Made by a program: the position numbers and the translations under genes. The notes under the pieces were generated by a model. It saw nothing but the letters and a program-made list of their open reading frames with translations, had not been told where the DNA came from and did no database searches. DNA of 64,000 bases, taken from contig CP075493.1 of the NCBI GenBank assembly GCA_021613535.1, positions 11,346,001 through 11,410,000 on the forward strand. The letters run 5' to 3'. The stretch comes from Adineta vaga (taxonomy: Eukaryota > Animalia > Rotifera). Below, in pieces: positions 2,795 through 61,466 of the stretch. Every line of letters starts with the position of its first letter. Positions within the stretch are counted from its first letter, which is position 1.

Positions 2795-5700
2795 TCAGTT
2801 TTCGAGTCGTAATATACTTTCATTGATATGTTGTTTAATATGTTTAATTATATGAGATGACGATGAATAGTTCTTATTATAAATCGATAAGGCTGTTTTA
2901 TATTCAGCTACTCCTTGATTGAATTGACCATTTTGAATATGAATTTTAGCCATAATTGCATAAATATCAGCTAATGATGAATCTTTTAATGAAGTAGTTT
3001 CAATTGATTTATTAAAATAATATAAAGCTTGATTATAATCACGTTTATCAAGATGAATATTTGCAATAATCAGATAATAAATATCAGTGGTGAATTCACT
3101 ATTTGAAGTTTTATTTTTGACTTGTAGACGAAGTAATTTTAGAAAATAATTCAATGCTTGATCTCTATAATAAGATATGAATGAATTATTGTGAAAAATT
3201 TGATAGAGATTAATAAGTAATTTTTGTTCCGATTTTGTTTGTGTATCAATTAATTGTTTCCAATGATCGGATGGTATTTCTTCCGTAGGATTATACACAT
3301 GTCTAATTGAATAAATTTTTCCTATCATTGTATAGATTTCTTCGATTACTAAATTTTGACTTTCACAAAAAATACATCGACTAAAGAAAAGTAATGCTTC
3401 GTCATAAATCTTTCGATGAAAATAAATATATGCCATTGTTTTATAAACATTTACTAATGAAGAATCTTTTGTTGTCTTTTTATCAACAATCTTCGTTAAT
3501 AGTTTATAAAAGTAGAGTAATGCTTGATTATAATCTTGTTTTGTTAGATTAATATTAGCAATAATTTTGTAGATTTCAATGAATGAAGAATCATCGGATG
3601 GTAATGTTTTCGATTGTTTATCGAGTATTTGTTGAAAATAACTTATTGCTTGATCACGATGTCGTTGATCAAAATATTTACCTTCGATAATTTTCAACGC
3701 GCTCGATGATGCAGATGATAATGGTTTAAAGATCGATTGTTCGAAATAATCATATGTTAAATAGATCATTTGAATATAAGAATAGGTTTCTTTGATTGAT
3801 TCCGTATCAATTGATTTAGCTTGAACATGACAATCTAATAGAAGATTAAAATATAATAAAGCTCGAGAGAATTGATGTTGTTTGAAGTAGATAATTCCAA
3901 TGATTTGATAAATATCCGCTAAAGATGGATCTTCAACAAGTGTTTTTTCTAATAATTTTGTTAATAATTTTCGAAAATATTTGATTGAATGTTTTAAATC
4001 TTCTCTTTCAAAATGAATTACACCGATTAGTTTGTAGATTTCAATAATTAGCGAATCATTTATTGGGATAATTTTCAATTCATAATGAAGTAATTTATGA
4101 AAATATTTTACAGCTTGATCGAAACTTTGCATTTCTAAATAAATATCTGCAAGAATTTTATATGAATTACTTAAAGATGATTTTTCTTTGATAGATTGTT
4201 CAAAATATGAAATAACTCGATTGAAATAACGATGTTCATTTGAATTTTTAGTCAGAGAGATTATTCGAAATGATCTTGGTAATCGTGCGGTTGTTATAAA
4301 TTTAATTTTTGCTTTTTGCTTTGAATCGAATCGATTATGATGAAGAAAAACCTTTCCAATATTTGTTAATGTTTCATTTAAGACTTTCGAATTCGTTTCT
4401 AATTGACAATCGAATAGATGATTATAATAAATAAGTGCTTGAGGAAAATCAGATTTTTCAAAATAAATATTAGCAATCAATTTATAAAGTTTAATTAATG
4501 TTCGATAATCGGATGGTTTTGTTTTCAATTGATTTAATAATAATTTCTTTAGATAAATTAATGCTTGATCATAATTATGTATTTCCATATTGATGTTTCC
4601 AATAACTTTATAGATGTCAATTAACATGGGATCTGTTGATGATTTCGTTGTTAATTCATTTTTCATTAAATTTTCATAGGAAACTAATGCATCATCCATA
4701 TTTCGTTTTTCTAATTGAATATTTCCAAGAACTTTATATAAATGACTTAGTTTCGGATCTCCAACTTGAAGTTTTTCCAATTGAACTTTCAATAATTCTT
4801 CAAAATAACGTAGAACTTGATCTAAATGTCGTTTTTCAAAATGTACACTTTCAATCATTCGAAATGAATCCGTTAAATCAATTGTATTTGTTATTCGATT
4901 TTGCATTTGTGTCATGATTAAATTTCCAAAATAGAGTAATGTATTATCGAAAAAATTATTCTGCGCATAGATATTACCGATAATTTCATAGATATCATCA
5001 ATTAATTTTTCATCTAACGGTTTTACTCGTGATTGAGCATCAACTAATCGATTTAAATGAATCAATGCCAGTGAATAATCTTCCGTTTTTAAATAAAGAT
5101 TTGCAAGAATTTTATATATATCAATTAATGATGGATCATCTGGAAGTTTACGTTCCAAATCATTTTTCAATGATTTACGAAAGTTATCTAATGCTTCATC
5201 TAAAGCATCTTTTTTCAAATATGTCTGTCCGATCGTATTGTATGTTTCTGTAATAGCAGGATTGCCTGTAGATAATCGTTGTAATTGATTTTTCAGAAGT
5301 TTATCGAGATAATCTAATGCTAAATCATAATTATTTCTTGCGAGATAAGTATTACCAAGAAGTGAATAAGTTTCTGCTACGGATGGATGTTTTCCGGATA
5401 ATGTTTTCAATTGATTTTCAAGTAATTTATGAAAATATTCTAATGCTCGATCATAATCACCTTTCTTTTTATAGAGTGAACCGAAATTTTTAAAACTTTC
5501 AGCAAAATCCGAATGATTATTTGGTAAAGATTTAAGTTGTAGATCATAGGCTTTCTGTATACATTCAAATGCTTTTGTTTCTTGGTCGAAATCAGAATAC
5601 ATCTGTCCCATAGCAATATAAGTATAACCTAAATCTGGATGATCAGAAGATAATGCTTGTTGTTGATTTTGAATTGCTCTTTCAAACATATTTATTGCTT

Positions 5701-7057
5701 TGTCAAATTGTTTTAAAGCTGTAAAGATTTTGCCAAATTCTATAAATGTATTTGCCATGGTCAATGACGTTGCATTGGATTGAGTTGTTAAACATTTATA
5801 TTGATATTCTAAAGCAATTTTATAATTTTTCATTCGAAAATGTAATTTCGATAGACCAGAATAAGTTATTGAATGATTATTTTTATCGATCTTTAATGCT
5901 TGTTCATAATGATGAAAAGCTAGTGGATAATTTTCTTGATACGAATGAATTAATCCTAAATCATTATGGCATTGTACAATAAGAGGATGATCTTTAGATT
6001 TCGAATCTTTCGATAAATAATTCATTGCTACATCTAAATGTTTTCGTGCATCATCATATTCTCCTTTCTTTTCATTAACTTGTGCAAGTCCATGATAACA
6101 ACTTGCTATATCTAAATCATCTTTTATTAATTTATCTTTTAATAATGTTTCATAATGTATTTCAGCTTCGTCAAATTTTTGCATTTGTATCAAATACGTA
6201 CCGAGACATACTAAAACATTCTTTCCTTCTAATTCTTTTTCTAATTCTTCTTGAAATCGAGTCAAATCACCATCTTCATCACTACATAATGTTAAATTTG
6301 CTCGCCAAATTTGTAATTTCTTATCAAACCAGATTTCATCAATACGAAAAACACAACCAAACATAAATAAAACTTCGTCTTCTTTTGCAAATGCACTTAA
6401 ATTTTTGACATCAGCATATGGTCGAGTAGATTGTTCTAAATTCAGAGAAATTTCTAATAAGATCGTTGTTAATGTATCTGATTTTGCTCCACTCATAGCA
6501 AATTCTAAAGCTTGTTGTCGATTTGTACTTGTGGATAGAAATGAATTCATAGAAAGTAATTGACCTTTGGCATATTTTATTCGATTAACTTCATCAACAC
6601 TTATCATTTGTCCACGATAAACTGTTAGAAATCTTGATGGACTTGTAACTAAAAACATGATTTGTTCATAGGCTAATTGATTATATAAATCACGAATAAA
6701 TTGAGTAAAAGCTATTAAATCTCCGATATTTTGTGTTCGTAATGCTTTATTCAATAAACGATAAATACATGATTCACGTGTATACCAATAAACAGCTTTC
6801 GTTCCTTTATAACTAGTATCATATTCGATCATAATAGTTTTATCTTTTTCATCTGTTGGCACAAAATGTTCAATCAGTTTGATTTTTTCAGATGAATCGA
6901 TCAAACCATTCGCTAATAAACGTTTAAGAATAACTTGATAGAGTAGAAATTCTCCATTTAAACTATTATGTTGACTTTGCATATCTTGTAAGCAAAAGAC
7001 ATTTGCCATTGAACCAGCATTTCCACTCGTTTTACTTACAGATTTTCTTCGCAACAT
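2795..7057 (-). CDS. ADP-ribosyltransferase (R-S-E clade) domain fused to a long TPR array, 1420 aa
   Basis: ART motifs VYRGQ, FLSTS and EDEVLF, followed by about 1100 aa of TPR repeats (e.g. HPDLGYTYIAMG, HPSVAETYSLLG); single ORF. Confidence 0.9.
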   Translation of the reverse strand: MLRRKSVSKTSGNAGSMANVFCLQDMQSQHNSLNGEFLLYQVILKRLLANGLIDSSEKIKLIEHFVPTDEKDKTIMIEYDTSYKGTKAVYWYTRESCIYRLLNKALRTQNIGDLIAFTQFIRDLYNQLAYEQIMFLVTSPSRFLTVYRGQMISVDEVNRIKYAKGQLLSMNSFLSTSTNRQQALEFAMSGAKSDTLTTILLEISLNLEQSTRPYADVKNLSAFAKEDEVLFMFGCVFRIDEIWFDKKLQIWRANLTLCSDEDGDLTRFQEELEKELEGKNVLVCLGTYLIQMQKFDEAEIHYETLLKDKLIKDDLDIASCYHGLAQVNEKKGEYDDARKHLDVAMNYLSKDSKSKDHPLIVQCHNDLGLIHSYQENYPLAFHHYEQALKIDKNNHSITYSGLSKLHFRMKNYKIALEYQYKCLTTQSNATSLTMANTFIEFGKIFTALKQFDKAINMFERAIQNQQQALSSDHPDLGYTYIAMGQMYSDFDQETKAFECIQKAYDLQLKSLPNNHSDFAESFKNFGSLYKKKGDYDRALEYFHKLLENQLKTLSGKHPSVAETYSLLGNTYLARNNYDLALDYLDKLLKNQLQRLSTGNPAITETYNTIGQTYLKKDALDEALDNFRKSLKNDLERKLPDDPSLIDIYKILANLYLKTEDYSLALIHLNRLVDAQSRVKPLDEKLIDDIYEIIGNIYAQNNFFDNTLLYFGNLIMTQMQNRITNTIDLTDSFRMIESVHFEKRHLDQVLRYFEELLKVQLEKLQVGDPKLSHLYKVLGNIQLEKRNMDDALVSYENLMKNELTTKSSTDPMLIDIYKVIGNINMEIHNYDQALIYLKKLLLNQLKTKPSDYRTLIKLYKLIANIYFEKSDFPQALIYYNHLFDCQLETNSKVLNETLTNIGKVFLHHNRFDSKQKAKIKFITTARLPRSFRIISLTKNSNEHRYFNRVISYFEQSIKEKSSLSNSYKILADIYLEMQSFDQAVKYFHKLLHYELKIIPINDSLIIEIYKLIGVIHFEREDLKHSIKYFRKLLTKLLEKTLVEDPSLADIYQIIGIIYFKQHQFSRALLYFNLLLDCHVQAKSIDTESIKETYSYIQMIYLTYDYFEQSIFKPLSSASSSALKIIEGKYFDQRHRDQAISYFQQILDKQSKTLPSDDSSFIEIYKIIANINLTKQDYNQALLYFYKLLTKIVDKKTTKDSSLVNVYKTMAYIYFHRKIYDEALLFFSRCIFCESQNLVIEEIYTMIGKIYSIRHVYNPTEEIPSDHWKQLIDTQTKSEQKLLINLYQIFHNNSFISYYRDQALNYFLKLLRLQVKNKTSNSEFTTDIYYLIIANIHLDKRDYNQALYYFNKSIETTSLKDSSLADIYAIMAKIHIQNGQFNQGVAEYKTALSIYNKNYSSSSHIIKHIKQHINESILRLEN

Positions 7058-27502: not shown

Positions 27503-28819
27503 TTAGATAAATGATTGAAAACGAGATATTTGTTCACAGATATCATTAAAGTTGGGCCTTTGTAATACTTCCGATTTCATACAATCTTCTTTTAATTGAT
27601 CCATAGCTGTAATTAGTTTTTCGTTCGATTCATTTGGATCCATGCGTTCTAGCAGTTCTTCTAGAAGACAACCAAAAGCTCTTACTTCTACACGTTCTAT
27701 GGCGAAGGAATGATGCGAACAATATTGAGTGTAAAAAGTAGCTGCACCAAAGTCGCCTAATAAAGTTCCAGTTGCACCCACTAAGATATTATGAGCATAA
27801 AGATCACCGTGCATAATACCACGGCTATGTAGATGAGCGGCTGCTGAAGCTATTCCAGATGCAATCTGCATGAGTTTGTCTACGGTGAAAATCGTACCGA
27901 GCGAATAAGTATCTCGCGTACATGTATCAAAATTTGGTGGATCGCCTAAAATCTTGAAATCAGGTGGAATAAGTTCAAAAACTAGACCTTTCTGTTGTTG
28001 CGTATAATCAATAGTTCTACCTAAAATTTTGACAAGATTTTGATGAACACCTACGGCTATACAAGCATTCATTTCATCGGCAGGTAAACCATCGCTTGTT
28101 ATTTCCCCCTTGAATAACTTTACGGCGACTTCCTGTTGCGTCTGTATTTGTTTCCAGTTAGCTTTCGAAATGATACCCGAAGCACCTTCACCTAGCCGTT
28201 CTATTAATGTCAACTCATTCCATGGAATTTCTGTAAGATCACTAGCGACTTGTGGCAGTTTACTACATGCATTGGAAGAAAATGACAACCATGACAATTT
28301 CGGTAATGATAGTAACCACGAAGGTATTTCAGTAAATTGATTGACCGATATGCGAATGAGTTCTAAGTTTTTGCATTGTGCCATGCTCATCGGTAGTTCA
28401 GTCAGAGCATTGCCTGCAAGCATTAGTTTTTGAAGTCGAATACATCGTCCAATCGTAGAAGGAATAGTCGTTATACAATTGTTAGTTAATACCAGCCAAC
28501 GTAGTGTGGGTGAAAAGACCTGTTCAGGTATAGAGGAAATCTTGTTTGCTTTAAAACCTATCATCTCCAAAAGTGGACATTGCGACAGTACCAAAGGTAG
28601 TTCTGTAAAATCATTATTGGCAAAGAAAGCGATCTTTAGTTTTTGTAAACATTTGAAATTGTCAGGTAAGTGTGTTAGATGATTGTTCGATAAATCAAGA
28701 ATTTCTAGTGAGTCGGAGAGATTCAGTATTTCGTGTGGAAATGTTGTTAGTTGGCAGGTAAGTTTGAGCTTTCGAATACCGACAAGTTGACCAGATTGCA
28801 ATTGTTCCAGTGTATGCAT
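27503..28819 (-). CDS. Bacterial-type leucine-rich-repeat Ser/Thr protein kinase
   Basis: N-terminus MHTLEQLQSGQL, LRRs, then GEGASG, VAVKLFKG, TSDGLPADE, HGDLYAHNIL and LGDFGAA; intronless. Confidence 0.9.
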   Translation of the reverse strand: MHTLEQLQSGQLVGIRKLKLTCQLTTFPHEILNLSDSLEILDLSNNHLTHLPDNFKCLQKLKIAFFANNDFTELPLVLSQCPLLEMIGFKANKISSIPEQVFSPTLRWLVLTNNCITTIPSTIGRCIRLQKLMLAGNALTELPMSMAQCKNLELIRISVNQFTEIPSWLLSLPKLSWLSFSSNACSKLPQVASDLTEIPWNELTLIERLGEGASGIISKANWKQIQTQQEVAVKLFKGEITSDGLPADEMNACIAVGVHQNLVKILGRTIDYTQQQKGLVFELIPPDFKILGDPPNFDTCTRDTYSLGTIFTVDKLMQIASGIASAAAHLHSRGIMHGDLYAHNILVGATGTLLGDFGAATFYTQYCSHHSFAIERVEVRAFGCLLEELLERMDPNESNEKLITAMDQLKEDCMKSEVLQRPNFNDICEQISRFQSFI

Positions 28820-42589: not shown

Positions 42590-44579
42590 ATGGCACAACA
42601 CGAGATTCAACTTACTAGTTTAACCATGGATATGCAACCACACATCCATCCAGTGGTTTCAAACCTTCGTAACGAAACACGAGCAGACACTTACATTGAA
42701 AATAGGTAGAAATACTATTGCATAAAATATTTCTATGGATTTGTTTTTAAGTGACAAAAAGAAAGAAAAAAAGACTTCTTGGTCTGCTTTAAAATGGCTA
42801 CTACTTATTCTGATTATCATTATAATTGGTTTATTGATCATCTGCATAGTCCTCGCGATTATGCTTGCAATTAAAAATACTGCAACAGGTATACATTACA
42901 ATTGATTTTTTCTTTGTGTCTTATATTCTTTCTCGTTGCTAACAATAAAGATTATTTGAGACATTATGAAAGTGTATAGAGCGCATTGCTTACACTCGTA
43001 CAAACCGGATGAAAAATGTAAGACAAAGTAATTGCACAATTCATCAATGTAAATTTATTGTAAATCATCAAAGTTTAGTATAGTACATGGAAAACGAGAT
43101 ACATTATGATACGATCGAAGAGTGCGAAAATTTGCGAGAAAAAAATGTATCCTGTCTATGTACTTGATATATGAAATTTGTTCCTTTTTTTCAAATAGAA
43201 ACCGTCATAGTAAGAACAACAACGACAACGACAACAACTTCAACGACCACGTCAACGACTACCTCGACGACGACTACAACTACTACGACTACATCAACAA
43301 CAACTTCCGCAACATCAGCAGAACTACGGAGTAAGTAATTAAGTTAGATAACATGTTCTTATTAAAAGGATAATTAATTCAAATGGGAAAAGCCACAAGT
43401 TGTATCTTTAGCTATTCAATATTCTCTATCATGATAGTAGATTTTCGAGTGCTGGTCATGACAACTCGAGGTTGACCTACTTTGCGTCGAAAATCAGCGT
43501 AGTATTACACTGATTACAGAGAAGGAAACTCATGTACAAGATTTAAAACATTTTCCTCTTCTGTTTTCGTTATTTTAGTATGGACAGTGACAGGAAATGT
43601 GAATACCGCACGATATGCACATACTGCATCGATATTAAACAATGGAAAAGTATTGATTGCTGGTGGAAATAGTGGCACTAATTATCTGAACAGTGTTGAA
43701 TTGTATGATCCATCAACAGGTATTTGGACAAATACAGGAAGCCTGAATACGGCACGACACGGACATGCATCATCGACATTAACAAATGGAAAAGTATTAG
43801 TTATTAGTGGACGTAGTAATACGGTTAATTATTTGAATAATGCTGAACTGTATGATCCGTCGACAGGCACTTGGACATATACAGGAAATATGAATACTGC
43901 GCGATTTGATCCCACAGCATCTCTATTAGGAAATGGAAAAGTTTTAGTTGCTGGCGGAGCTAATGTTAGTGTAGCTGTAAACAGTGCTGAATTGTTTGAT
44001 CCGTCAACCAATACTTGGACTAGTACAGGAAGTATGAACACTGCACGATATAGACATATCGCATCGGTATTAACCAATGGAAAAGTTTTAGTTGCTGGTG
44101 GAACTGATGGGAGTGTAACTTTAAAGAATGCTGAATTGTATGATCCATCAACCGCTACTTGGACTAGTACAGGAAGCATGAATGCTGCACGAGTTGATTT
44201 CAAAGTAGTCCTCTTAACCAATGGAAAAGTATTAGTTTCTGGTGGACACAATACTGCTGGTCAGCAGAGTAGTGCTGAGTTGTATGATCCATCCACTGGC
44301 ATTTGGACATATACAGGAAACATGAATATCCCACGATATTATCATTCATCATCCATATTAACAAATGGATTTGTATTAGTTACTGGCGGAATTCAGGATT
44401 CTAGTACTTATCTAAACAGTGCTGAATTATATAATCCATCTGTAGGTACTTGGATAATTACAGACGATATGAATGCTGGACGAAGTGAACACACAGCATC
44501 GATACTGACAAATGGAAAAATATTAGTTTCGGGTGGAGCCTCCTCTGGTACTTTTCCGAATATGGCTGAATTATATTGA
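42590..44579 (+). CDS. Type II membrane protein: cytosolic N-terminus, TM, poly-Thr stalk, 7-bladed kelch beta-propeller; 4 exons
   Basis: TM exon KWLLLILIIIIIGLLIICIVLAIML; Thr exon at about 43199-43330; seven repeats of MNTAR..H.AS.L.NGKVLV.GG...AELYDP. Confidence 0.88.
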
Positions 44580-45132: not shown

Positions 45133-47507
45133 TCAATTCATAAAAATATCATCTTTCCATGTACCATCTTGAATTGTACCATTTGCAAAAATGAATTTTC
45201 CTAATCCCTGTTTATTATCATCTTTCCAATATCCTAGAAAATGATCACCTTCAGGCCAAAACATTTCACCATATCCATCTGCCGTATTATTTATTGAATG
45301 GCCAACATATTTTCTACCATCAGTATAATTATAAGTACCATTGCCATGCATCATGTCATTTTTCCAATGGCCTTGGTACCATGAATTATCCGGCCAATGC
45401 ATTTCACCATATCCATCTTTTGTATCATTAACAAAGTGGCCGATATATTTTCCTCCATCAGCATAATAATAAGTTCCATTTCCATTCATCTTATCAAACC
45501 TCCAGCCACCTTCATAACGTGCTCCTCCTGGCCAAACCATTGCACCATAACCATTGAATGTATCATTAACTGATTCACCAACATATTTTCTACCGTCTGC
45601 ATAATAATAAGTACCATTCCCATTCATCATATCATTTTTCCATCCGCCTATGTAACGGGCATCATCAATCCATTGCATAGTACCATAACCATCGAAATTA
45701 TTATCAACCAAGTGACCAACATATTTTTTTCCATCACTATAATAATATGTACCATTTCCATGCATACTATCATTTCTCCAATATCCTATATAATGATCAC
45801 CATTTTTCCAAAACATTTCACCTAATCCATCCTTAATACTATTGATATAGTGACCAATAAATTTTTTACCATCTGCATAATCGTAAGTTCCATTTCCATG
45901 CATACTATCATTTTTCCAGTATCCCAGATAATGATCACCTCCAGGCCAAAACATTTCACCATAGCCATCAGCTGTATCTTGAATTGAATGACCGATATAT
46001 TTTCTACCATCAGCATAATAATAAGTACCATTTTCATGCATCATATCATCTCTCCAATGACCTTCATATCGCGTATGATCTGCCCAGAACATTTGACCAT
46101 AACCATTGGATGAACCATTAATAAAATTGCCAACATATTTTCTACCATCAGCATAATAATAAGTACCATGACCATTTAACATACCATTACTAAGATATCC
46201 TTCATATCGATCATCATTATTGTAAGTAATATCTAGAATGTTTTCAAAGTAACATCGAATCATGTGAAAAGAAGATCAAACTCACTAATATAAGTTGGTA
46301 TGTTAGAAAACGTTGAAATGAACGGCCAACGATAGTTAACTTCGATACCACCTCGAAAACGATTTGTTGTTGAATTAAATTTTGGAATACGTGGACCTAG
46401 TACTATATATCAAGAATACAATTATTTCAGTGAAACACATAATAGATTAAATGAATAAAGTACCAGATTCAGGGCGAAATAATCCTGTCACATTAGTAGA
46501 TGATAATTTTCCACACTACAAATAAGTAATTTAGTCAATAGAAAACTTCTACATTTTATGTTTGTAACCTACTATTTTTTTCTCTAATCTTGCGTATCCT
46601 AATGCAATAAGTTCGGCTACGGAGAAAATTTGATCATGTTTGTTAAATAATGGAGGTAAAACATAAACTAGATGAATATTTATTTAAAGAAATACAATTT
46701 CTTATAATATTACTACTAACTATCTTTATTTGGTGCATAGATGACTGTTTGTGCACTTAACGAATGCAAAAAAATCCGCTGTGTAACTTGAAAACTTGTA
46801 AATGGTCCAAGCAAAGCTAATGAATATGAATTTCTGTTGAAAAATAGCATAAATGAAATGTTTTATTTTTACATACGAAATGTACGAAGAGTATATCGAG
46901 CTGCTGGAAAACGAAATCGTTGTGAGACTCGATGTCTACCATCTTCTGTTGGTTGACGTATGAAAATATTTATATGTCCGATTTTATTAGGTTTCTATTT
47001 ATCGAAAAGATACTTTTACAATTCGAAAACCTAGTTACAATCAAATAACTTACATAACGAGATCGTTGATCTTTTGATTCACTATTACCATATCTATTTC
47101 TACCAAATGATTGACTTGACCAATCATCGTCACAATTAGCAGCATTACCATCATCTATTTCATGATTTCCATGACGATTAAGTTTCGTCAATAACACTTT
47201 AGTTTAGAAATAAAAAAAATACAAGTTTCCTTTGCGAATTATATAATTTACTTTTGTTATCATTATTGGTTTTGTGTTTATTTTCATATATTTTAGAAGA
47301 AATTAACAGTGTTACAAATGTAATCATTATAATAAATAAACTAATAGCGGTACAAAGCCATATCGTTTTTGCAACACGATCAGTAGAATATGACCCTAAT
47401 CGTATACGCTGTTGTGGTTGTTGTTGTTCAGTTTCTATTGTCAAAGATTCTATTATTTCTTTTTCTTCATCTTCATACCACGATCTTCCATTTCTTGTAC
47501 TCATCAT
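45133..47507 (-). CDS. Type II membrane protein with an unknown ectodomain and 15 MORN repeats; about 8 exons
   Basis: TM IWLCTAISLFIIMITFVTLLI; six small in-frame middle exons; last exon has 23-aa Y.G.W....M.G.G repeats. Confidence 0.82.
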
Positions 47508-49593: not shown

Positions 49594-50996
49594 ATGGATA
49601 ATCAAGAATTTCGTGGTATTTTGTTAAAACTTCAAGATCGTTTAAGTGATAATGATCGTAAACGTTTACATTTCTTTTTTGGTAATGATGTTCCACGACG
49701 TATTCGTGATGATCCAACACTTGGTGGTACTCTTAGTCTATTGGAATCACTTTTCGATCAAGACAAAATAAATGAACAAGATTTTAGTGTACTAGTCAAT
49801 GCATTAGAAGAGATTTGTTGTTCAGATGCGGCAAAATTATTAAAAGGTGAGATTATCAACTACAGTTCATATATTTTCCTATTTTACTCGAATTAGATCA
49901 TATGAAACAAACAAAATCATATGGTACAAAACAACCGCTAGAAAGATTATCATCTATTATGCCAAGTGGAATAATCAATGACTTATTGAATGATCTTGAA
50001 GAAGATAGATGTGCAATGAAAACTGGTGCATATGAACAAAGATCATATTTCTCATTTGAATTCATTATCTTCATCGTTCATTTCTAGATCAATATGCTGT
50101 ACATTGTATTAGTAATATAAATGCTCATGTATTTCATGATACAAGACCTAATATCAGTCCACCTACGATTATTATGCAAACAGAGAATAAATCACAATCA
50201 AAATGTTCACATTTTTTTATACATATGCCAGTATTTCAAAAGTATTTGGTGCTCGTTGTGATAATCTTCTTTATTACTTCGTTCATATTCTTAAGTTTAT
50301 TTATTCAAAAAACGTCTTTAATCAGTGCTCTTCGAAAAAATTCCAATACAAGTACTGAAAATGATTCGGAAATGAATAAAACTATTCAATTCTTAAATAA
50401 AAGCATGATACTTCTTGAACAAGAGAAAAGTAAGTGAAACAGAATTCTGATTATCGATGATGTGTCAAACGAAGTTTTTAGATCAATTACCAATTCGTAG
50501 TGGTACTCGATTTTGTGGAGTTGGAGGTGGTTATTTTGATGATTCATTAATATCAAATTTTACTTGTTCTCATCATCTTCGTGGTATGAGTAATCAACAT
50601 CGTTCTTCGTCATCGAATTGGTTTCAATTTCATTATTCATCAATGGATCGTCCTAGTCCTATTCTTAAAAGTGATGTACATGGTGCAAAGAAATTCGATT
50701 CTGAATCTGATATATCAGAACAATTCTATCTAGATAGAGATGATGTTGTTTATAAAATTCAAGTATTATGTCGAAATACAAATTATTATAAAGGAGACAA
50801 AACTTATACTGTTTCGGCCGTTCGAGCAATACGATTATTTACAAAAAAGGAACGAAGTAGTGCACCAATTGAAGATACTAATGGTGATTTATATACGGAA
50901 CAATTTGATGGATATTATGTAGCTTATGCTACTGGATTATCAGGAATATATCTCGATCAAATACAATTTTATTGGACTCGAGCAGCGAAGAATTGA
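49594..50996 (+). CDS. Death-effector-domain (DED) + TM + jacalin-like lectin, type II receptor; 4 exons
   Basis: Exons 49594-49846, 49897-50025, 50088-50429 and 50482-50996 splice in frame (all phase 1). DED-like FRGILLKLQDRLSDNDRKRLHF...LLESL..QDKINEQDF; TM YLVLVVIIFFITSFIFLSLFI; jacalin-like GVGGGYFDD...GLSGIYLDQIQFYW. Confidence 0.85.
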
Positions 50997-52713: not shown

Positions 52714-53008
52714 TTAGTTATCACAACGACCAGCAATCGATCTCCAACTTCCATTCACTTTGCATTTGCAAGATGTGTAACCAAATCCACGGCATGAACC
52801 AGTTACAGCACCGATATTCTTGCCAATGCAATTAGCTTCACAACGTGCTGAGTTCCATGGACATCCACAACTTCCAGCCGAAGCCATATCTATAAGAGAA
52901 AAATAGATTTACTTGTTTCTTCAAAGCTTTTCACATTGTTGTTCATATACCTAATGTCATTCCAAGAAAGAGAACAACGACAACGAGAAGAATAAGAGCA
53001 CGAGTCAT
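52714..53008 (-). CDS. Secreted CS-alpha-beta defensin-like peptide with 8 Cys (77 aa, 2 exons)
   Basis: Exons 53008-52951 and 52889-52714 give MTRALILLVVVVLFLGMTLDMASAGSCGCPWNSARCEANCIGKNIGAVTGSCRGFGYTSCKCKVNGSWRSIAGRCDN*, with a C..CxxxC..GxC..CxC motif. Confidence 0.88.
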
Positions 53009-53540: not shown

Positions 53541-54005
53541 TTAACAGTTGTTTTCTTTTGCATATTTACTTGTCCACTCGCTTGCCATGTAATTGTACAT
53601 TTTTTGATCTGTTCGATAGAGTTTCAAAGCTTCCTTATTCAGTCCATGTTCTGGATTGGGATCTGTTAGTAATGAACATAATGATATTAGAAGACCACGT
53701 ATCGTCAATGCTGGCGACCATTGTGAGTGTAAAATATCCAAGCAGATTTCTCCATTTGAGCTGATATTTGTATGGAAAATATTCGTAGTGAAACGTACAG
53801 TAGGTGGTTTGAAAGGAAATTCTAGTGGAAAGTCGATTATTAAATGAAATCTGCCACCAGCATATGGTGTATTTTGTGGTCCATCGATCCAGCCGACCCA
53901 ATGAAGCATGTTTTTGCTTGGATCTTCAGGTTCTGCGTAACATAATGGAGCGGGATTCTTTTGCAATTCGTCAAAATGAATAGCGAGACGTTTCGCAAAA
54001 GCCAT
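53541..54005 (-). CDS. Ubiquitin-conjugating enzyme E2 (divergent UBE2D/Ubc4-like)
   Basis: GPQNTPYAGG, FPFKPP, FHTNISSNGEICLDIL (catalytic Cys), QWSPAL and DPNP; ATG at 54005. Confidence 0.92.
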   Translation of the reverse strand: MAFAKRLAIHFDELQKNPAPLCYAEPEDPSKNMLHWVGWIDGPQNTPYAGGRFHLIIDFPLEFPFKPPTVRFTTNIFHTNISSNGEICLDILHSQWSPALTIRGLLISLCSLLTDPNPEHGLNKEALKLYRTDQKMYNYMASEWTSKYAKENNC

Positions 54006-54746
54006 AATACTAAAGTAGAAATAATCTAAAAAAGAAAGAAAAATACGATCTTCACTTGAAACAATTCCAACCAAAATTGGTCTGTTATATTATAAAGTCA
54101 ATGAGCAGACACTGCCCGTTGTGCAAAAGTGCCGTATAATATATGGCAATGAATAGCGGGCAAAAGTTGTGTCCTACGAGAACGAATTTTTCTGATCCCC
54201 ATTCGCATGGGAAATGGGAATGCGAATAGAAAAAAGGCCAATCCCGCAGAACAGTAGGGAAAAGCCAACACAGCTAAGAAGGAAGTAAATTAATATTTCC
54301 TTAGTGCATTCTGTGAAACATTTCTGATTGACTTCACGACACAAATCTATAAAAATAACATCTTTCAAAATAAATAAAAAAAGCAATGAAACAACCTATT
54401 TACATATATAAAAAATTTCAGATGGTATCAATTGGTACGACGTCATATCATTCGTCGAAACAACTCATGACTCTTATCGGAATAGTTATCAATATTTACA
54501 AATAATAGAAATTTCTGACGAAAAAAAATACAAATATTAATCATTTATAATGGCAAAGAATGTTATGATTAATAACCTCTGTACTTGCATAACAACACAG
54601 AAATATATATTTCAACATAGTCATGTTACTCATGTAATCAATTGCAACATATTTTGAAAGTATACTGAAATAGAAAAGAGAAATAAAGCATCAAGAGAAA
54701 CTTTTCCATTTGATGGCACCACGTTTCATAGTTCTTTGTTCTCATT

Positions 54747-56130
54747 TTAATATAGGAGGACGAAGAAGAGAAAGACTGAAAGAAGAAGTGTCACTGTTTG
54801 GTAGAGACTGATAATTTGATAACATGCAGATGAATGAAGTGTTTTCTTTTCGAAACAGTCAAACAATTGATCTGTGAGATTAACTAAAGTAGTTGTTACT
54901 TGTTGAGCCAATGCATCGCCCCAAGTAATATCACCACTAGACAATAGAATCACGCCTAAGTTGCGTTGTTCATTGATCATCATTGAATGAGCAACACCAG
55001 GCATCCATCCTCGATGACCAACAAGATGTCGACCGTTTTGAAGTCGCCAATTCCAAATCAGTGCGTACCGTACATCAGGTTCTTCGACTGATCCATCCTG
55101 TCGAACAATACGCAGCATTTCATTGATTGATGACGATTTCTGCAGAAGACGAGGAGTGAAATTATTCAAAAATGATCGGAGATAGATGGATAAAGAATAA
55201 GTTGACATTCGAAGCATGGCTGCTGGATAGACACTAATACTGTAAGGAGGTATATAGAGCCATTCAGATGAGTTTGGTGCCTGTGAAATAAAAGAAATAG
55301 TGTTAACACTATATGATCAGTTCTAGTAAAACGGAAAATTGTACCTGAACAACATTTAATTGTGGAATAATCTGTTGATAAGTAGCTAACAATGATATAT
55401 TGTAGACAAAATGTTCAACTATATCTTCACGTTTCGAAGCAAAATCTGCCAAACGATAACTGGCTTCTGTATGTCCAATTTCTAATCGATCAAAAATCAT
55501 CAATCGTACATAACGTTCAAATGTTAGATGTGAGACACGTTCCACGACCAAAGCACCCCATGCTGCATTTACATTAGAGTAATATGTTACATTGCCTGGC
55601 GCTTTTGCAAGCCAACTCGCATTATTTGTCAAATACCGTAGAGTAACTTCGGTTAAATTAGTTTTCACAAAATCATCACCTGGCATTCCATGCTGAAATT
55701 CTTCTTCATAATTCGATCCAAGGCCAGTTGAATGTGAAAGAATATGACGCATTGTAATTGTGACATTTGGAAAGAATGGATGAAATATTCGTATTGGAAA
55801 ATTTAAATATTGATTGACATCCTTATCAAGATCAAGAACTTCTTTTTCGACCAGTTGCATCGCAGCTAGAGCAACAAATGTTTTTGAAATAGAAGCAATA
55901 ACAAAAATCGATTGTGATGTATCAATGGGATGTTCAGTAGAAAGAGGAGAATGATAACCGAAACCTTCGGCGTAGAGAACATCTGTAGCATTAACAACTA
56001 TAGCTGCAAAACCCGGCATATGGACACGACGAAGTTCATTTTCAATTGATATTTTCGATGGAGGACATTGTCGTGCTGTTGTAGTTAGTGATGACATAAT
56101 AAAAATAAATATACATTGCATGACAATCAT
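54747..56130 (-). CDS. Beta-lactamase/serine-hydrolase family protein with signal peptide and C-terminal hydrophobic anchor; 2 exons
   Basis: SxxK (SISK), LSHSTG, YxN (YSN) and HxG (HRG); intron at 55281-55344. Confidence 0.88.
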
Positions 56131-56720: not shown

Positions 56721-59700
56721 ATGCGACTGCTATATTTATTCACATTTATCATTTTATGCAAAGTATTCAATACACATTATTCTGTCTATCATTCAGATCA
56801 ATCGTTATCAACTAATTTTGGATTCGATTGTCTTTATGGTCATTTGACAGATAATGAAGAATACGAAGATATTCGTAGTGATACAACATATCATTTGATT
56901 TCTTATTGTAGAAGACCAATTGAACATGATGATGATGAAAATGAGAAAGAATCAATTCTTTCAACTGAAAACATATACAATAATATAACATTTACTGAAT
57001 TATATCAATATGGTGTAACAACTGAACAATTACTCAATTGGTCAGCACCAATTGATCTTGTTGAACAATATGCCATGAAAGATAATACAGATCGAATACA
57101 CATTTTTTACAATTGTTCATTGCCTTGGTTCGGTCCTAAATGTCAATATAAATTCGACAATAATGCATCCTTATCGTTTAATGAAATTCTTCGATTAAAT
57201 TTTCTTACACGAATAAGAATTACTAGCACCTTACCTGATTTCGATATTGATACATGTTATCCATTTTTAATCAATTGTTCTTATAAATTACCATTCATGT
57301 GTCTTGATTGGCGTGAAATTTGTGATGGCAAATATGATTGTATGAATGGAGAAGATGAACAAAACTGTCAAACAATGGAAATATTCGAATGTCCTGATAA
57401 TACTTATCGATGTCATTATGGTGGACAATGTATTCCATTGACATTTGTCCGAGATAAACATAGTCATATCGATTGTCTAGATGGTACTGATGAGACAGTA
57501 GTTATTGAACAAGAAAATGCCTTATTCGGAGCATTTTGTTATACAATTCCAACATTTCAATGTGAAGAACATATGAGTCGTTATCAATTTTCTTCTCAAT
57601 GCGGTGATGGATATTATTATCCATATCATTTGAGTACTCGAACGAAAATGAGTTGTGCTAATGGACGATTTTTAAAATTGAAATTGTCTCGAAATGATTC
57701 ATTTTCAAATATTTCAAAACAATCCTGGAAAGAATTATTAGAATCAACATTGATTTCCAATATGCACATTTGGTATCGAACATTAACGAATTCCAATTCA
57801 ATGTATACATTACTATCTTGTAAATCTACAAATAGAATATGTTTGTCAAATTGGTTTTTCAAAGTACAATTATTTAACACTCATCCTATGTTTCATTTCA
57901 TTTATTTATCAAATCGTTCATTTTCTGATTTCTATCATTATGTACAACCGAATTACATTTGTTTTTATCCGAAAGATTGCTTACAATTGGTTAAAGATGC
58001 GATCGATATTGGTTTAAATAATGGATTGATTTGTTATTATACGAATGATATTTCGGAAGAATCAATCACCAATGAAACACAAATACGAAAAGTTCTAGAT
58101 AAATTGTTTCTTCGTTGTGTAACAACAGGTATCGAACGAACATGTTCACATTCATCTCTTTTTCATTGTTCGATCTCATTGAAATGTATTTCTAAACATC
58201 GTCTCGTTGATGGCATTTCTGATTGTTATTATAATGAAGATGAACTATTCGATAGTTGTCAATTAAATGATTCACAACGATTTATTTGTTCATCTGAACC
58301 AAACAAATGTTTAGCACCCATTGCTTTATATAATCGAAAATATGAATGTCAAGGAAAAGAAGATGAAATGGATGAAATTCAACGAAATATTCTCAAAGGA
58401 TATGTACCTATTGGTCTTATATGTGATGGTGTGAAAGAACAGTTATTAGAACATGCTAATGATACCGATGAAACAGATTGCAAATATTGGCCATGTAATA
58501 ATCCTTATACACGATGCAATGGTGTTTCAACTTGTCTGGATGGTACTGATGAACTGAATTGTCCTCTACTAGAATACAGTATAAATACGGGTCAGTGTTC
58601 AAAACAAATTGTTACAAATCTATTTTGTGAACGGGCTATACATTCAATTGCAAACAAATTCGATAGTAAAATAGTTCATGTTACAAATAATACTGTCCTA
58701 GATTATGCGACAAATAAAAATCGTACGAAATGTTTCATAACACCGAAGTGCTACTCATTACCACAAATATGTCAATTCGACGTTTTAAATACATTATTCG
58801 ATCAACTTTGTCATCTACCTGAAGCGTTAGTCTGCTTGCTTGAGTTGTTCTATTGGAAACCAATACTTCGAACGAATATTTGTCATTTTAATTTGTACAC
58901 ATCTAGCAAAGACGATCAAGTACAATCGGCATTTACATCAACACAACTTGGCTACTTTCCAATAGTTTCATCTGCTTTATCTAACTCAAATAATTCCAAT
59001 ATGAAAACAACTACTAGCATTGAAACACTAACGAAAACATTTAAAAACTGGTATTGTAATCGTGGTATTCTTGTTTTTCACAAAAACAATCAAACAAAAA
59101 CATGTCTATGTCCACCCACTTATTTCGGTCATCGATGTCAATGGCAAAATCAACGTCTTAGTTTAACATTTCAATTTATCTATCAAACAAATACTTATAA
59201 TACAATTCTCATCTTTCAACTTATTATTATGCTTATTGATCAACAAAAACATATGACATCCTATCATGAACAAATTCTTTATATTCCCAAAGAAAATTGT
59301 GATACAAAATATAATATTTATTTACTTTATCCAACTAGACCAAAGAATCTTTCAATAAATTATACAATTCATATTGATATATTTGATAAAGTAACATTGA
59401 CTTATTATGGAAGTTGGTTTTTATCAATTCCATTTCTATTTTTACCCGTTAATCGAATTGCAACGCAAATATTTATTCCAGCTACACCTAAAATGATATC
59501 TAAATCATGTCCTTTAGTTTGTGGTCATCACGGTCAATGTGTTGAATATCTAAATCAGAATAATTCCTATTTTTGTCAATGTCATCAAGGATATTCAGGT
59601 TTACATTGTCATATTCCTCATCATTGTTCTTGTTCATCCGATTCATTATGTTTATCATCATCAATTTGTGTTTGTCCAGTAAATAAATTCGGTTCAAAAT

Positions 59701-61466
59701 GTTATTTAAATCATTCCATATGTCAACAATCAACTAATCCTTGTCAAAATCATGGATTTTGCGTACCTGTCGATGATCGAATGGGTTTAAAGAAATTCTT
59801 TTGCTTATGTCCCGATGGTTTCTCTGGAAGAACATGTGAACATCATCAGAATCGAATTGATATCAGATTTGATCCTAAGAAGATTACTATGACACCATTT
59901 ATATATGTACATTCTATCCGAGCATTAAAAAATGATAATCATCAATATACAACTATATTAAAAAAAGTTCATCCTGAACAAAATCTTCTTACAATTTATG
60001 TGAAATTTCCATTTCATTTGATTTTCATTGAATTATTTGATCATAAATTTTATTTAGCTGTTTTAAGAGAAAAATTTCTTGAATCCGAACATATTCAAGC
60101 AAATATTGTCTTTAATCAACGATGTTTTCATATTAGTGAATTAATGAATAAACTATTTCTTAATTATTCATTTCTTCATCGTGTAAAATATTATCCATTA
60201 TTATGTCAAGAAAATCTTCATCTCATGTGTTTCTATGATGAAAGACAAATGTGTACTTGTGATCGTTCTCGTTTTTCTAATTGTTTTACATTTAATATTC
60301 CATCCCTGTCATACGATTGTCAAGGAAGAAACATTTGTGAAAATAATGGTCTATGTTTACAAGATAATCCTGCATGTCCAACACAATCGATATGCGTTTG
60401 TCGACAATGTTTTTATGGAACGAAATGTCAATTTTCAATGAAAGGTTTTGTTTCATCACTTGATTATATTCTTGGCTATCATATTATACCAAATCGTTCA
60501 ATAAATCAACAATCATTTATTATTAAAATGACGCTTGTAATCACAACAATTATGTTTTGCCTTGGATTACTCAATGGTTTTCTATCGATTGTAACATATC
60601 GAATAAAAGAAATCAAATGTATTGGATGTGGATCATATTTGTTAGTTTCATCATGGAATTCTATGTTTTTAATCATAATGTTAGAAGTTAAATGTTGGCA
60701 TTTACTTTTATCCCAAATGTCCGTTCTAAATAATCGATCGTATTTGGAATTCACTTGTTTATCTTTAGATGTTATTCTTAATGTTCTCATTGCAACGAAT
60801 GATTGGTTTGGTGGATGTATTTCAATTGAACAAGTATTTAATACATTTAAAGGTGTAAATTTTAATCAAAATCGAAGTAAGAAACTAGCAAAACGAATTA
60901 TATTTGGAATATATATTTTAACAATTTTAACGAATATTCATGATCCTTTTTATCGTCAATTGATTGATGATATCGATATTGATGAACGACGAACATGGTG
61001 TATTGTTCAATATTCACCTACAATTGATACTTACAATACAATTGTTACGTTTTTTCATTTTCTTATGCCTTTGTCAATCAATTTCTTATCAACTTTCATC
61101 GTTATTTTCCTAATGGCACAATCTCGTTCAACAACACGATCACAAATAACATTCAATGCAAATTTACGTGAACAATTTCATCAACATAAACATAATTTAA
61201 TTGCAACATGTGCATTATTTTTCTTAGCTTTACCTCGTTTAATTATATCGTTTGTAAGTAGATGTATGAAATCATCACAAGATCCTTCATTATTTCTTAT
61301 TGGTTATCTTATTTCATTTATTCCATCGATGATGACATTCTTTGTTTTTATCATGTCAGCAGATGGATACAAAGAAGAATTCTATTCAAGTGTTCGACGA
61401 TTTTTTACAAGAATACATCGAATGAGAGTTGGAGTACTAGTTAATGTTATGAACTTCATGTTTTAG
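56721..61466 (+). CDS. Large intronless 7TM receptor with an LDLa/EGF ectodomain (1581 aa)
   Basis: Signal peptide, LDLa motifs (CDGKYDCMNGEDE, CLDGTDE), EGF motifs (C.C..GYSG..C) and C-terminal rhodopsin-like TMs. Confidence 0.9.
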   Translation: MRLLYLFTFIILCKVFNTHYSVYHSDQSLSTNFGFDCLYGHLTDNEEYEDIRSDTTYHLISYCRRPIEHDDDENEKESILSTENIYNNITFTELYQYGVTTEQLLNWSAPIDLVEQYAMKDNTDRIHIFYNCSLPWFGPKCQYKFDNNASLSFNEILRLNFLTRIRITSTLPDFDIDTCYPFLINCSYKLPFMCLDWREICDGKYDCMNGEDEQNCQTMEIFECPDNTYRCHYGGQCIPLTFVRDKHSHIDCLDGTDETVVIEQENALFGAFCYTIPTFQCEEHMSRYQFSSQCGDGYYYPYHLSTRTKMSCANGRFLKLKLSRNDSFSNISKQSWKELLESTLISNMHIWYRTLTNSNSMYTLLSCKSTNRICLSNWFFKVQLFNTHPMFHFIYLSNRSFSDFYHYVQPNYICFYPKDCLQLVKDAIDIGLNNGLICYYTNDISEESITNETQIRKVLDKLFLRCVTTGIERTCSHSSLFHCSISLKCISKHRLVDGISDCYYNEDELFDSCQLNDSQRFICSSEPNKCLAPIALYNRKYECQGKEDEMDEIQRNILKGYVPIGLICDGVKEQLLEHANDTDETDCKYWPCNNPYTRCNGVSTCLDGTDELNCPLLEYSINTGQCSKQIVTNLFCERAIHSIANKFDSKIVHVTNNTVLDYATNKNRTKCFITPKCYSLPQICQFDVLNTLFDQLCHLPEALVCLLELFYWKPILRTNICHFNLYTSSKDDQVQSAFTSTQLGYFPIVSSALSNSNNSNMKTTTSIETLTKTFKNWYCNRGILVFHKNNQTKTCLCPPTYFGHRCQWQNQRLSLTFQFIYQTNTYNTILIFQLIIMLIDQQKHMTSYHEQILYIPKENCDTKYNIYLLYPTRPKNLSINYTIHIDIFDKVTLTYYGSWFLSIPFLFLPVNRIATQIFIPATPKMISKSCPLVCGHHGQCVEYLNQNNSYFCQCHQGYSGLHCHIPHHCSCSSDSLCLSSSICVCPVNKFGSKCYLNHSICQQSTNPCQNHGFCVPVDDRMGLKKFFCLCPDGFSGRTCEHHQNRIDIRFDPKKITMTPFIYVHSIRALKNDNHQYTTILKKVHPEQNLLTIYVKFPFHLIFIELFDHKFYLAVLREKFLESEHIQANIVFNQRCFHISELMNKLFLNYSFLHRVKYYPLLCQENLHLMCFYDERQMCTCDRSRFSNCFTFNIPSLSYDCQGRNICENNGLCLQDNPACPTQSICVCRQCFYGTKCQFSMKGFVSSLDYILGYHIIPNRSINQQSFIIKMTLVITTIMFCLGLLNGFLSIVTYRIKEIKCIGCGSYLLVSSWNSMFLIIMLEVKCWHLLLSQMSVLNNRSYLEFTCLSLDVILNVLIATNDWFGGCISIEQVFNTFKGVNFNQNRSKKLAKRIIFGIYILTILTNIHDPFYRQLIDDIDIDERRTWCIVQYSPTIDTYNTIVTFFHFLMPLSINFLSTFIVIFLMAQSRSTTRSQITFNANLREQFHQHKHNLIATCALFFLALPRLIISFVSRCMKSSQDPSLFLIGYLISFIPSMMTFFVFIMSADGYKEEFYSSVRRFFTRIHRMRVGVLVNVMNFMF

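Follow-up and report, generated by a model that had tools for sequence, protein, structure and literature searches.

We describe I4U23_003694, a gene of the bdelloid rotifer Adineta vaga that encodes an N-terminal DED, a linker, a single transmembrane (TM) helix, a stalk and a C-terminal jacalin-like lectin domain. On balance we favour the view that its product is a type II glycan-sensing immune receptor which clusters DEDs for a partner other than caspase-8. The gene would represent one combination of modules among about 45 bdelloid DED-TM genes whose last exons are exchanged. It lies in a window of 64,000 nucleotides (G000:C1:11346001-11410000) of the A. vaga genome, which comprises 100.8 Mb in six contigs. 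Bdelloids resist fungal pathogens, and the DED-TM family offers concrete, testable candidates for their recognition.

Exon structure and domains of I4U23_003694

GT-AG introns were enumerated over positions 49594-50996 of the window, and eight combinations each yielded one open frame. The chosen combination predicts a product of 412 aa and three introns of 50, 62 and 52 nt with phases 1/1/1. This four-exon model is identical to the A. vaga database protein P0121, the hypothetical protein I4U23_003694. The seven other combinations were rejected, as they agree neither with the public model nor with the orthologue of Adineta ricciae. Folds and database searches were run exon by exon; P0121 surfaced in the exon 1 search and was compared locally. 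The preliminary description of this DNA had proposed four exons joined in frame and separated by phase-1 introns throughout. Both points are borne out by the public protein and by the A. ricciae gene, in which the splice sites and the phases are kept. The features, in window coordinates, are as follows.

49594 to 49846, plus strand: exon 1, DED (residues 1-84) with a phase-1 donor at its end; from Pfam, the AF2 model and structural matches
49847 to 49896, plus strand: intron 1, 50 nt, phase 1
49897 to 50025, plus strand: exon 2, predicted cytosolic linker with the family motif SLSxIMP...LLxDxxED[KR]; from the family linker alignment
50026 to 50087, plus strand: intron 2, 62 nt, phase 1
50088 to 50429, plus strand: exon 3, variable linker, transmembrane helix and stalk
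50243 to 50305, plus strand: transmembrane helix and probable signal anchor, about residues 180-200, Kyte-Doolittle peak 3.06
50312 to 50429, plus strand: stalk with four N-glycosylation sequons (214, 219, 224, 231) and a short heptad pattern
50430 to 50481, plus strand: intron 3, 52 nt, phase 1; ectodomain swap point
50482 to 50996, plus strand: exon 4, jacalin-like beta-prism I domain (residues 243-412) and stop codon
50517 to 50531, plus strand: GG loop (G254-G258), predicted sugar site, aligned with the GG loop of ZG16
50943 to 50957, plus strand: predicted GXXXD mannose-binding motif (G396-D400), counterpart of G147-D151 of ZG16

As modelled, exon 1 folds as a DED and lies nearer to DEDs than to PYD, DD or CARD. 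The AlphaFold (AF2) model, made from 79 relatives, has six helices and a pLDDT of 91.6. In a wide structural search with this predicted model DED chains took ranks 1-11 (Z 10.7-11.9, rmsd 1.5-2.2), the DEDs of FADD, vFLIP, PEA-15 and caspase-8 being the best folds; the best other death folds reached Z 9.8 (PYD), 8.6 (DD) and 7.7 (CARD). Foldseek ranked DED assemblies of caspase-8, cFLIP and FADD first, none of which reached E 0.001. Pfam DED (PF01335) matches exon 1 with E 8.5e-8 and 32.8 bits, slightly under the curated cut-off of 35.9, which is exceeded by seven paralogues. Among solved structures the best sequence match of the exon 1 family profile is caspase-8 DED1 (E 9e-6); a single-sequence search of the PDB sequences gave no useful match. 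The helix-2 phenylalanine F27 aligns with the FL motif of caspase-8 and is kept in 75 of 79 rows. The RxDL charge-triad motif of helix 6 reads CxDA in this gene and in most of the receptors (C76 in 70 of 79 rows), and RxD[LI] is retained in the two DED-only proteins of the genome. To our knowledge, the RxDL motif is not universal among DEDs.

A single hydrophobic segment is found in the product, with a Kyte-Doolittle peak of 3.06 at residues 182-200, and the N-terminus has no hydrophobic stretch. Sequence statistics make a type II topology likely, with the DED inside and the lectin outside. Lysine and arginine are richer on the N side of the helix in 31 against 12 of 52 TM-bearing relatives (Wilcoxon p 0.015; the relatives are not independent), and the family has 2.9 sequons per 100 aa in the 45 residues after the helix as compared to 1.2 on the N side. 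Judged by eye, the coiled coil of the stalk is short, comprising about two heptads (I227/L230/M234/L237). The conserved acidic motif of the linker was considered as a hemITAM, a reading ruled out by the lack of YxxL; in this gene a Cys stands at the position of the Tyr. Its reading as a caspase-cleavage site is disfavoured on general grounds, as K or R follows the Asp.

Exon 4 scores 24.7 bits with Pfam Jacalin, above the cut-off of 22, and its AF2 model has a pLDDT of 91.1. The model matches jacalin-related and mannose-binding beta-prism lectins as well as ZG16 (Foldseek E to 3.5e-8, Z up to 17.7), and its nearest cluster in the Atlas, with 54 members, consists of rotifer jacalins. In these lectins the mannose site is defined by the GG loop and the GXXXD motif, Asp151 of ZG16p being essential (PMC4059138). 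The jacalin family profile aligns both loops with ZG16. Since both are intact in exon 4, the jacalin domain of I4U23_003694 is predicted to bind mannose/glucose-type glycans. The Asp of the GXXXD motif is lost in about half of the other jacalin rows. Taken together, the parts named in the preliminary description are recovered: a DED-like N-terminal domain with a predicted death fold, one TM helix without a signal peptide, a short coiled coil and a C-terminal jacalin-like domain modelled as a beta-prism I. The type II orientation that it had suggested is favoured by the skews in charge and sequons.

I4U23_003694 has a one-to-one orthologue in A. ricciae (locus L081). The orthologue reads as an open 421-aa four-exon product with the same phases; six of six splice sites are at aligned positions and the introns have diverged. 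The TM helix is at the same place (hydrophobicity peak 2.78), and the GG loop and the GXXXD motif of the sugar site are retained. Identity between the two species is 89% in the DED (dN 0.054, dS 1.33), 60% in exon 2, 31-42% in the linker, TM helix and stalk of exon 3, where the frame and the helix are retained, and 74% in the jacalin exon (dN 0.18, dS 0.82, dN/dS about 0.2), the ratios being rough because dS is near saturation. By these substitution rates the DED and the jacalin domain are under purifying selection, and the linker and the stalk evolve faster. A pseudogene or chance frame is ruled out by dN far below dS. The public A. ricciae model omits most of exon 3, though the exon is open there, which is probably a prediction error.

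A two-exon defensin-like gene is found at 52714-53008 (minus strand) of the window, with a signal-peptide exon and an 8-Cys peptide which among PDB sequences matches an arthropod-type defensin best (E 4.6e-4). The same neighbour is present at the orthologous locus of A. ricciae (72% DNA identity). As it adjoins the receptor gene in both Adineta species it supports orthology; for an immune role its support is circumstantial. Other genes in the window encode an ART-TPR protein (2795-7057, minus), an LRR plus kinase-like protein (27503-28819, minus), a Kelch propeller (43587-44579, plus), MORN repeats (45133-46263, minus), a beta-lactamase-family hydrolase (55309-56130, minus) and an LDLa/EGF protein (56721-61466, plus). 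An ORF at 53541-54074 (minus) resembles, by eye, a ubiquitin-conjugating E2 enzyme.

DED genes of bdelloids and their last exons

Searching the A. vaga genome with exon 1 revealed DED exons at 54 places, and the family profile added one broken copy. A TM-bearing frame lies within about 700 nt of the DED exon at 44 of the 54, and the DED-TM genes number about 45. With few exceptions a phase-1 GT closes the DED exon. In at least eight A. vaga copies the DED is interrupted by stops or frameshifts. The last exons of the A. vaga genes encode an NHL propeller (12 genes), jacalin (about 10), TPR (5) or DM9 (3); further members have small unclassified last exons and some seemingly end after the coiled coil. 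Among full-length relatives with a named source, Adineta and Rotaria are the only genera represented.

When public models were mapped to DNA, the same three phase-1 junctions were found in jacalin, NHL, DM9, TPR and GH16 members, after residues about 85, 116-134 and 207-250. In a weakly resolved tree of 38 A. vaga DEDs (84 columns; built without several near-duplicates and without the loci whose DED is broken or partial) the last-exon labels need 16 changes, against a minimum of 8 and a shuffled mean of 25; the labels are therefore clustered but re-paired. A single clade of jacalin-bearing DEDs is rejected (p-AU 0.001). The earlier suggestion of exon-shuffled, swappable ectodomains fits both the common junction before the five kinds of last exon and the rejection of this clade. 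The ectodomains attached to the DED exon are jacalin, NHL, TPR and DM9 in A. vaga and GH16 in A. steineri.

The A. steineri member (locus L086; P0126 and five relatives) is a DED-TM protein ending in a laminarinase-like GH16 domain, the catalytic acidic residues of which are replaced in six of the six copies seen. Replacement of these residues is the pattern of insect glucan-recognition proteins, and from its sequence the A. steineri protein is a candidate beta-1,3-glucan sensor. Carbohydrate-recognition folds of three unrelated kinds are found repeatedly as last exons: jacalin, DM9 and, in A. steineri, the beta-1,3-glucanase fold. DM9 is a mannose-binding PRR fold (PMC10377782).

Several loci depart from the common plan. 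The first of four tandem DED-jacalin genes (L031:8167-8406, minus strand; G000:C4:11117169) has no TM frame, and its product is a possible soluble decoy. At L034:906-1448 (minus strand), 1.5 kb after the start of a DED-TM gene, a frame encodes a mannanase galactose-binding-like domain (PF21253, E 1e-23); it possibly represents another carbohydrate ectodomain, or else a gene of its own. On a metagenome contig (L085:1745-2087) a DED fragment is fused to the second half of a jacalin domain upstream of an intact family gene. This fusion is the deletion product of a tandem copy.

Possible DED partners and alternative readings

The preliminary description had proposed a candidate glycan-sensing death receptor that couples microbial glycans to DED signalling without a FADD-type adaptor. 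On this reading, once triggered by glycans, the DED would itself recruit a DED-caspase, nucleate caspase filaments and start apoptosis. The domain is indeed a true DED with caspase-8 DED1 as its best profile match among solved structures (E 9e-6), and the A. vaga genome contains 70 caspase-domain matches. At least one of them is an animal-type caspase, with a QACRG motif inside the match at C1:5158082, but it lies megabases from any DED. No DED was found within the 30 best of the 70 caspase loci, where a very divergent DED prodomain could be missed, and no DED exon of the genome reads into a caspase domain. None of the 55 DED places shows a DED joined to a caspase or to a death domain, as in a DED-caspase or a FADD-type adaptor, a search that could likewise miss divergent DEDs. 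Between any caspase match and a DED the shortest distance is 4.6 kb, the DED being that of a DED-TM-TPR gene; between a death domain and a DED it is 17 kb. The motif DCC[RQ] is present in 23 of the 30 best caspase loci and QACRG in none of these 30, and several of the caspase-like genes examined begin right at the peptidase domain. Many A. vaga caspase-like genes have been described as divergent and horizontally acquired (PMC11258130), and rotifers have been reported to be without a DED-containing caspase-8 (PMC12066828). With no detectable DED-caspase, the caspase-filament step is left without its partner, and we consider a death receptor of this kind improbable. As caspase-8 was not found in A. 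vaga, the receptor probably reports microbes by another pathway.

Genome searches for CARD, NF-kB RHD, IRF and TNFR repeats were blank; they were run without a positive control and are not evidence of absence. Along with only one credible QACRG caspase among 70, they suggest an unusual immune and death toolkit. Paired adjacent death-domain matches at G000:C2:6577916-6578497 and C5:11530128-11530674 are possible adaptor genes.

Two A. vaga helicases, with RIG-I as best structural relatives, are tipped by the same type of DED. They are encoded at G000:C5:14943574-14949500 (L041), where a DED-only ORF at C5:14943574 is followed by two DED-tipped RIG-I-like helicase (RLR) genes with DEDs at C5:14944045 and C5:14947766, the first of these genes apparently fragmented. 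A tandem DED-DED RLR was considered at this locus and rejected, the first DED being a separate ORF with its own stop. A single-exon DED-only protein of 126 aa with a canonical RxDL motif is encoded at G000:C2:2299807 (minus strand; L049) and is a candidate adaptor or decoy. In the A. vaga DED tree the receptor DEDs are separate from those of the RLRs and of the DED-only proteins. Lophotrochozoans are known to have DED-RLRs; the RLR survey does not mention rotifers (PMC8998645).

These helicases give rise to another explanation, in which the DED-TM core works as a MAVS-like adaptor that docks the DED-tipped helicases and the C-terminal domain provides location or a second input. The DED type shared with the RLRs would fit, as would the absence of a detected CARD (in the uncontrolled search), the order death fold-linker-TM, which is the layout of MAVS, and the several members that end soon after the TM helix and coiled coil. 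However, there are just two RLR genes to about 44 TM genes, and their DEDs, as those of the DED-only proteins, branch apart from the receptor DEDs. A C-terminal part of 210 residues argues against a tail anchor, and large, varied and sequon-rich C-terminal parts with kept sugar sites suit a sensor better; an adaptor role seems distinctly unlikely to us. That the proteins are soluble cytosolic DED-lectin sensors, the TM exon being skipped or the topology not being type II, is more improbable still. Several public models are without a TM helix (P0290, P0142, P0147 and others), a TM frame is missing from one DED-jacalin gene of A. vaga (L031:8167), and NHL and TPR folds are usually cytosolic. Yet the genomic DNA spanned by P0290, P0142 and P0147 contains open TM exons, the gene of A. 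ricciae gives an intact 421-aa four-exon product with a TM helix, and the TM exon is kept at 44 of 54 loci. A glycan receptor outside immunity, in which the DED is no more than an oligomerisation or scaffold module, could sort food or symbionts, mediate adhesion or self recognition, or act in glycoprotein trafficking or in the membrane stress of drying, and even jointly we hold these roles to be unlikely. The jacalin domain is conserved between species (74%, dN/dS about 0.2) and not hypervariable, the RxDL motif is degenerate, and no canonical immune or death effector turned up in the uncontrolled CARD, RHD, IRF and TNFR searches. The rapid birth and death of genes, with at least eight broken copies, the recurrent gain of microbial-glycan folds, a non-catalytic glucanase among them, and the use of a DED shared with RLRs nevertheless resemble immune repertoires.

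We therefore return to the type II glycan-sensing immune receptor as the reading we favour. The TM helix would serve as a signal anchor that leaves the DED in the cytosol and places the glycosylated stalk and the jacalin domain outside or in the lumen. The lectin would bind mannose/glucose-type glycans, most plausibly those of fungal or oomycete walls, and multivalent binding together with the short coiled neck would cluster the receptors. The clustered DEDs could then nucleate a homotypic DED assembly, by analogy with DED biology. Their partner would not be caspase-8 and is probably a DED-bearing protein common to the DED-tipped RIG-I-like helicases; the DED-only proteins and the DED-TM members without an ectodomain are candidates. 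A defence response would be the output. Several points speak against this reading. Most last exons belong to the NHL and TPR classes, folds that are usually cytosolic and are not known to sense glycans. The GXXXD Asp is missing from about half of the jacalin rows, the RxDL motif reads CxDA in most members, and no downstream component was found in the CARD, RHD, IRF and TNFR searches, which had no positive control. Among the rows listed in the supplements of PMC11258130 there is no DED, jacalin or infection-response entry.

A wider proposal, which we advance tentatively, is a DED-centred immunity of bdelloids. About 45 shuffled type II receptors, with lectin, glucan-binding, propeller and TPR sensors, and the DED-tipped helicases might converge on DED assemblies and signal without caspase-8 or FADD, possibly also without CARDs, NF-kB or IRF. 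If true, both the receptor class and its output pathway would be new. As our searches turned up no DED-caspase, identification of the DED partner would reveal DED assemblies at work in a non-apoptotic or non-canonical way. I4U23_003694 is a good first test case on account of its one-to-one A. ricciae orthologue, its predicted intact mannose-type site and a single residue, D400, which offers a binding-dead control.

Comparison with known receptors and adaptors

Genuine DEDs reside on cytosolic adaptors, caspases and some cytosolic sensors. BAP31 and BAR are membrane proteins once said to hold DED-like segments, which presumably are not regarded as true DEDs. No description of a DED as the tail of a single-pass receptor, or of the present architecture, was found in the open-access literature. 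On recognition receptors for cell-wall glucans in bdelloids, PMC11258130 offers no more than speculation.

The product of I4U23_003694 shares with the TNFR death receptors (Fas/CD95, TRAIL-R) a single membrane pass and a death-fold domain predicted to be cytosolic, and in both clustering would drive homotypic assembly. TNFR death receptors are type I proteins that carry a signal peptide, Cys-rich TNFR repeats as well as a death domain; FADD is their only link to DEDs. In contrast, the DED is here on the receptor itself, which is predicted to be type II with a lectin ectodomain: the DED is N-terminal, no hydrophobic stretch precedes it, and the jacalin domain is C-terminal. Moreover, neither FADD nor a DED-caspase was found in A. 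vaga. Type II C-type lectin receptors such as Dectin-1, DC-SIGN and CLEC-2 have their N-terminus inside, a short stalk or neck and a C-terminal sugar-binding domain. The rotifer protein resembles them in its predicted N-in topology, stalk and C-terminal lectin, and a role in pattern recognition is probable. It differs in the beta-prism I fold of its lectin and in its tail, a folded DED and not an ITAM or hemITAM, the linker motif being without YxxL. By its features the protein falls outside both the TNFR death receptors and the C-type lectin receptors.

The lectin domain itself has the beta-prism I fold, GG loop and GXXXD motif of the mannose-specific jacalin-related lectins ZG16p, BanLec, Heltuba and artocarpin. 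Identity to these is about 12-20%, and none among the structure and literature matches is fused to a DED via a membrane anchor. In plants chimeric jacalins have been linked to antifungal defence, as in the jacalin-lectin kinase OsJacLK1 (PMC13165441). The grafting of a DED onto an immune sensor by exon gain has a parallel in the DED-RLRs of lophotrochozoans and in death-fold-grafted NLRs (PMC8998645, PMC5094078). Those sensors are cytosolic, whereas the sensor described here is predicted to span the membrane and is swapped among many folds. The order of parts also recalls a further system. MAVS is a CARD-linker-TM adaptor with an N-terminal death fold, a disordered linker and one TM helix; unlike the rotifer proteins it has a CARD and not a DED, is tail-anchored without a large C-terminal domain and exists as a single copy. 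Overall, the receptor family appears to use known logic and to combine the workings of type II lectin receptors with those of death-fold receptors.
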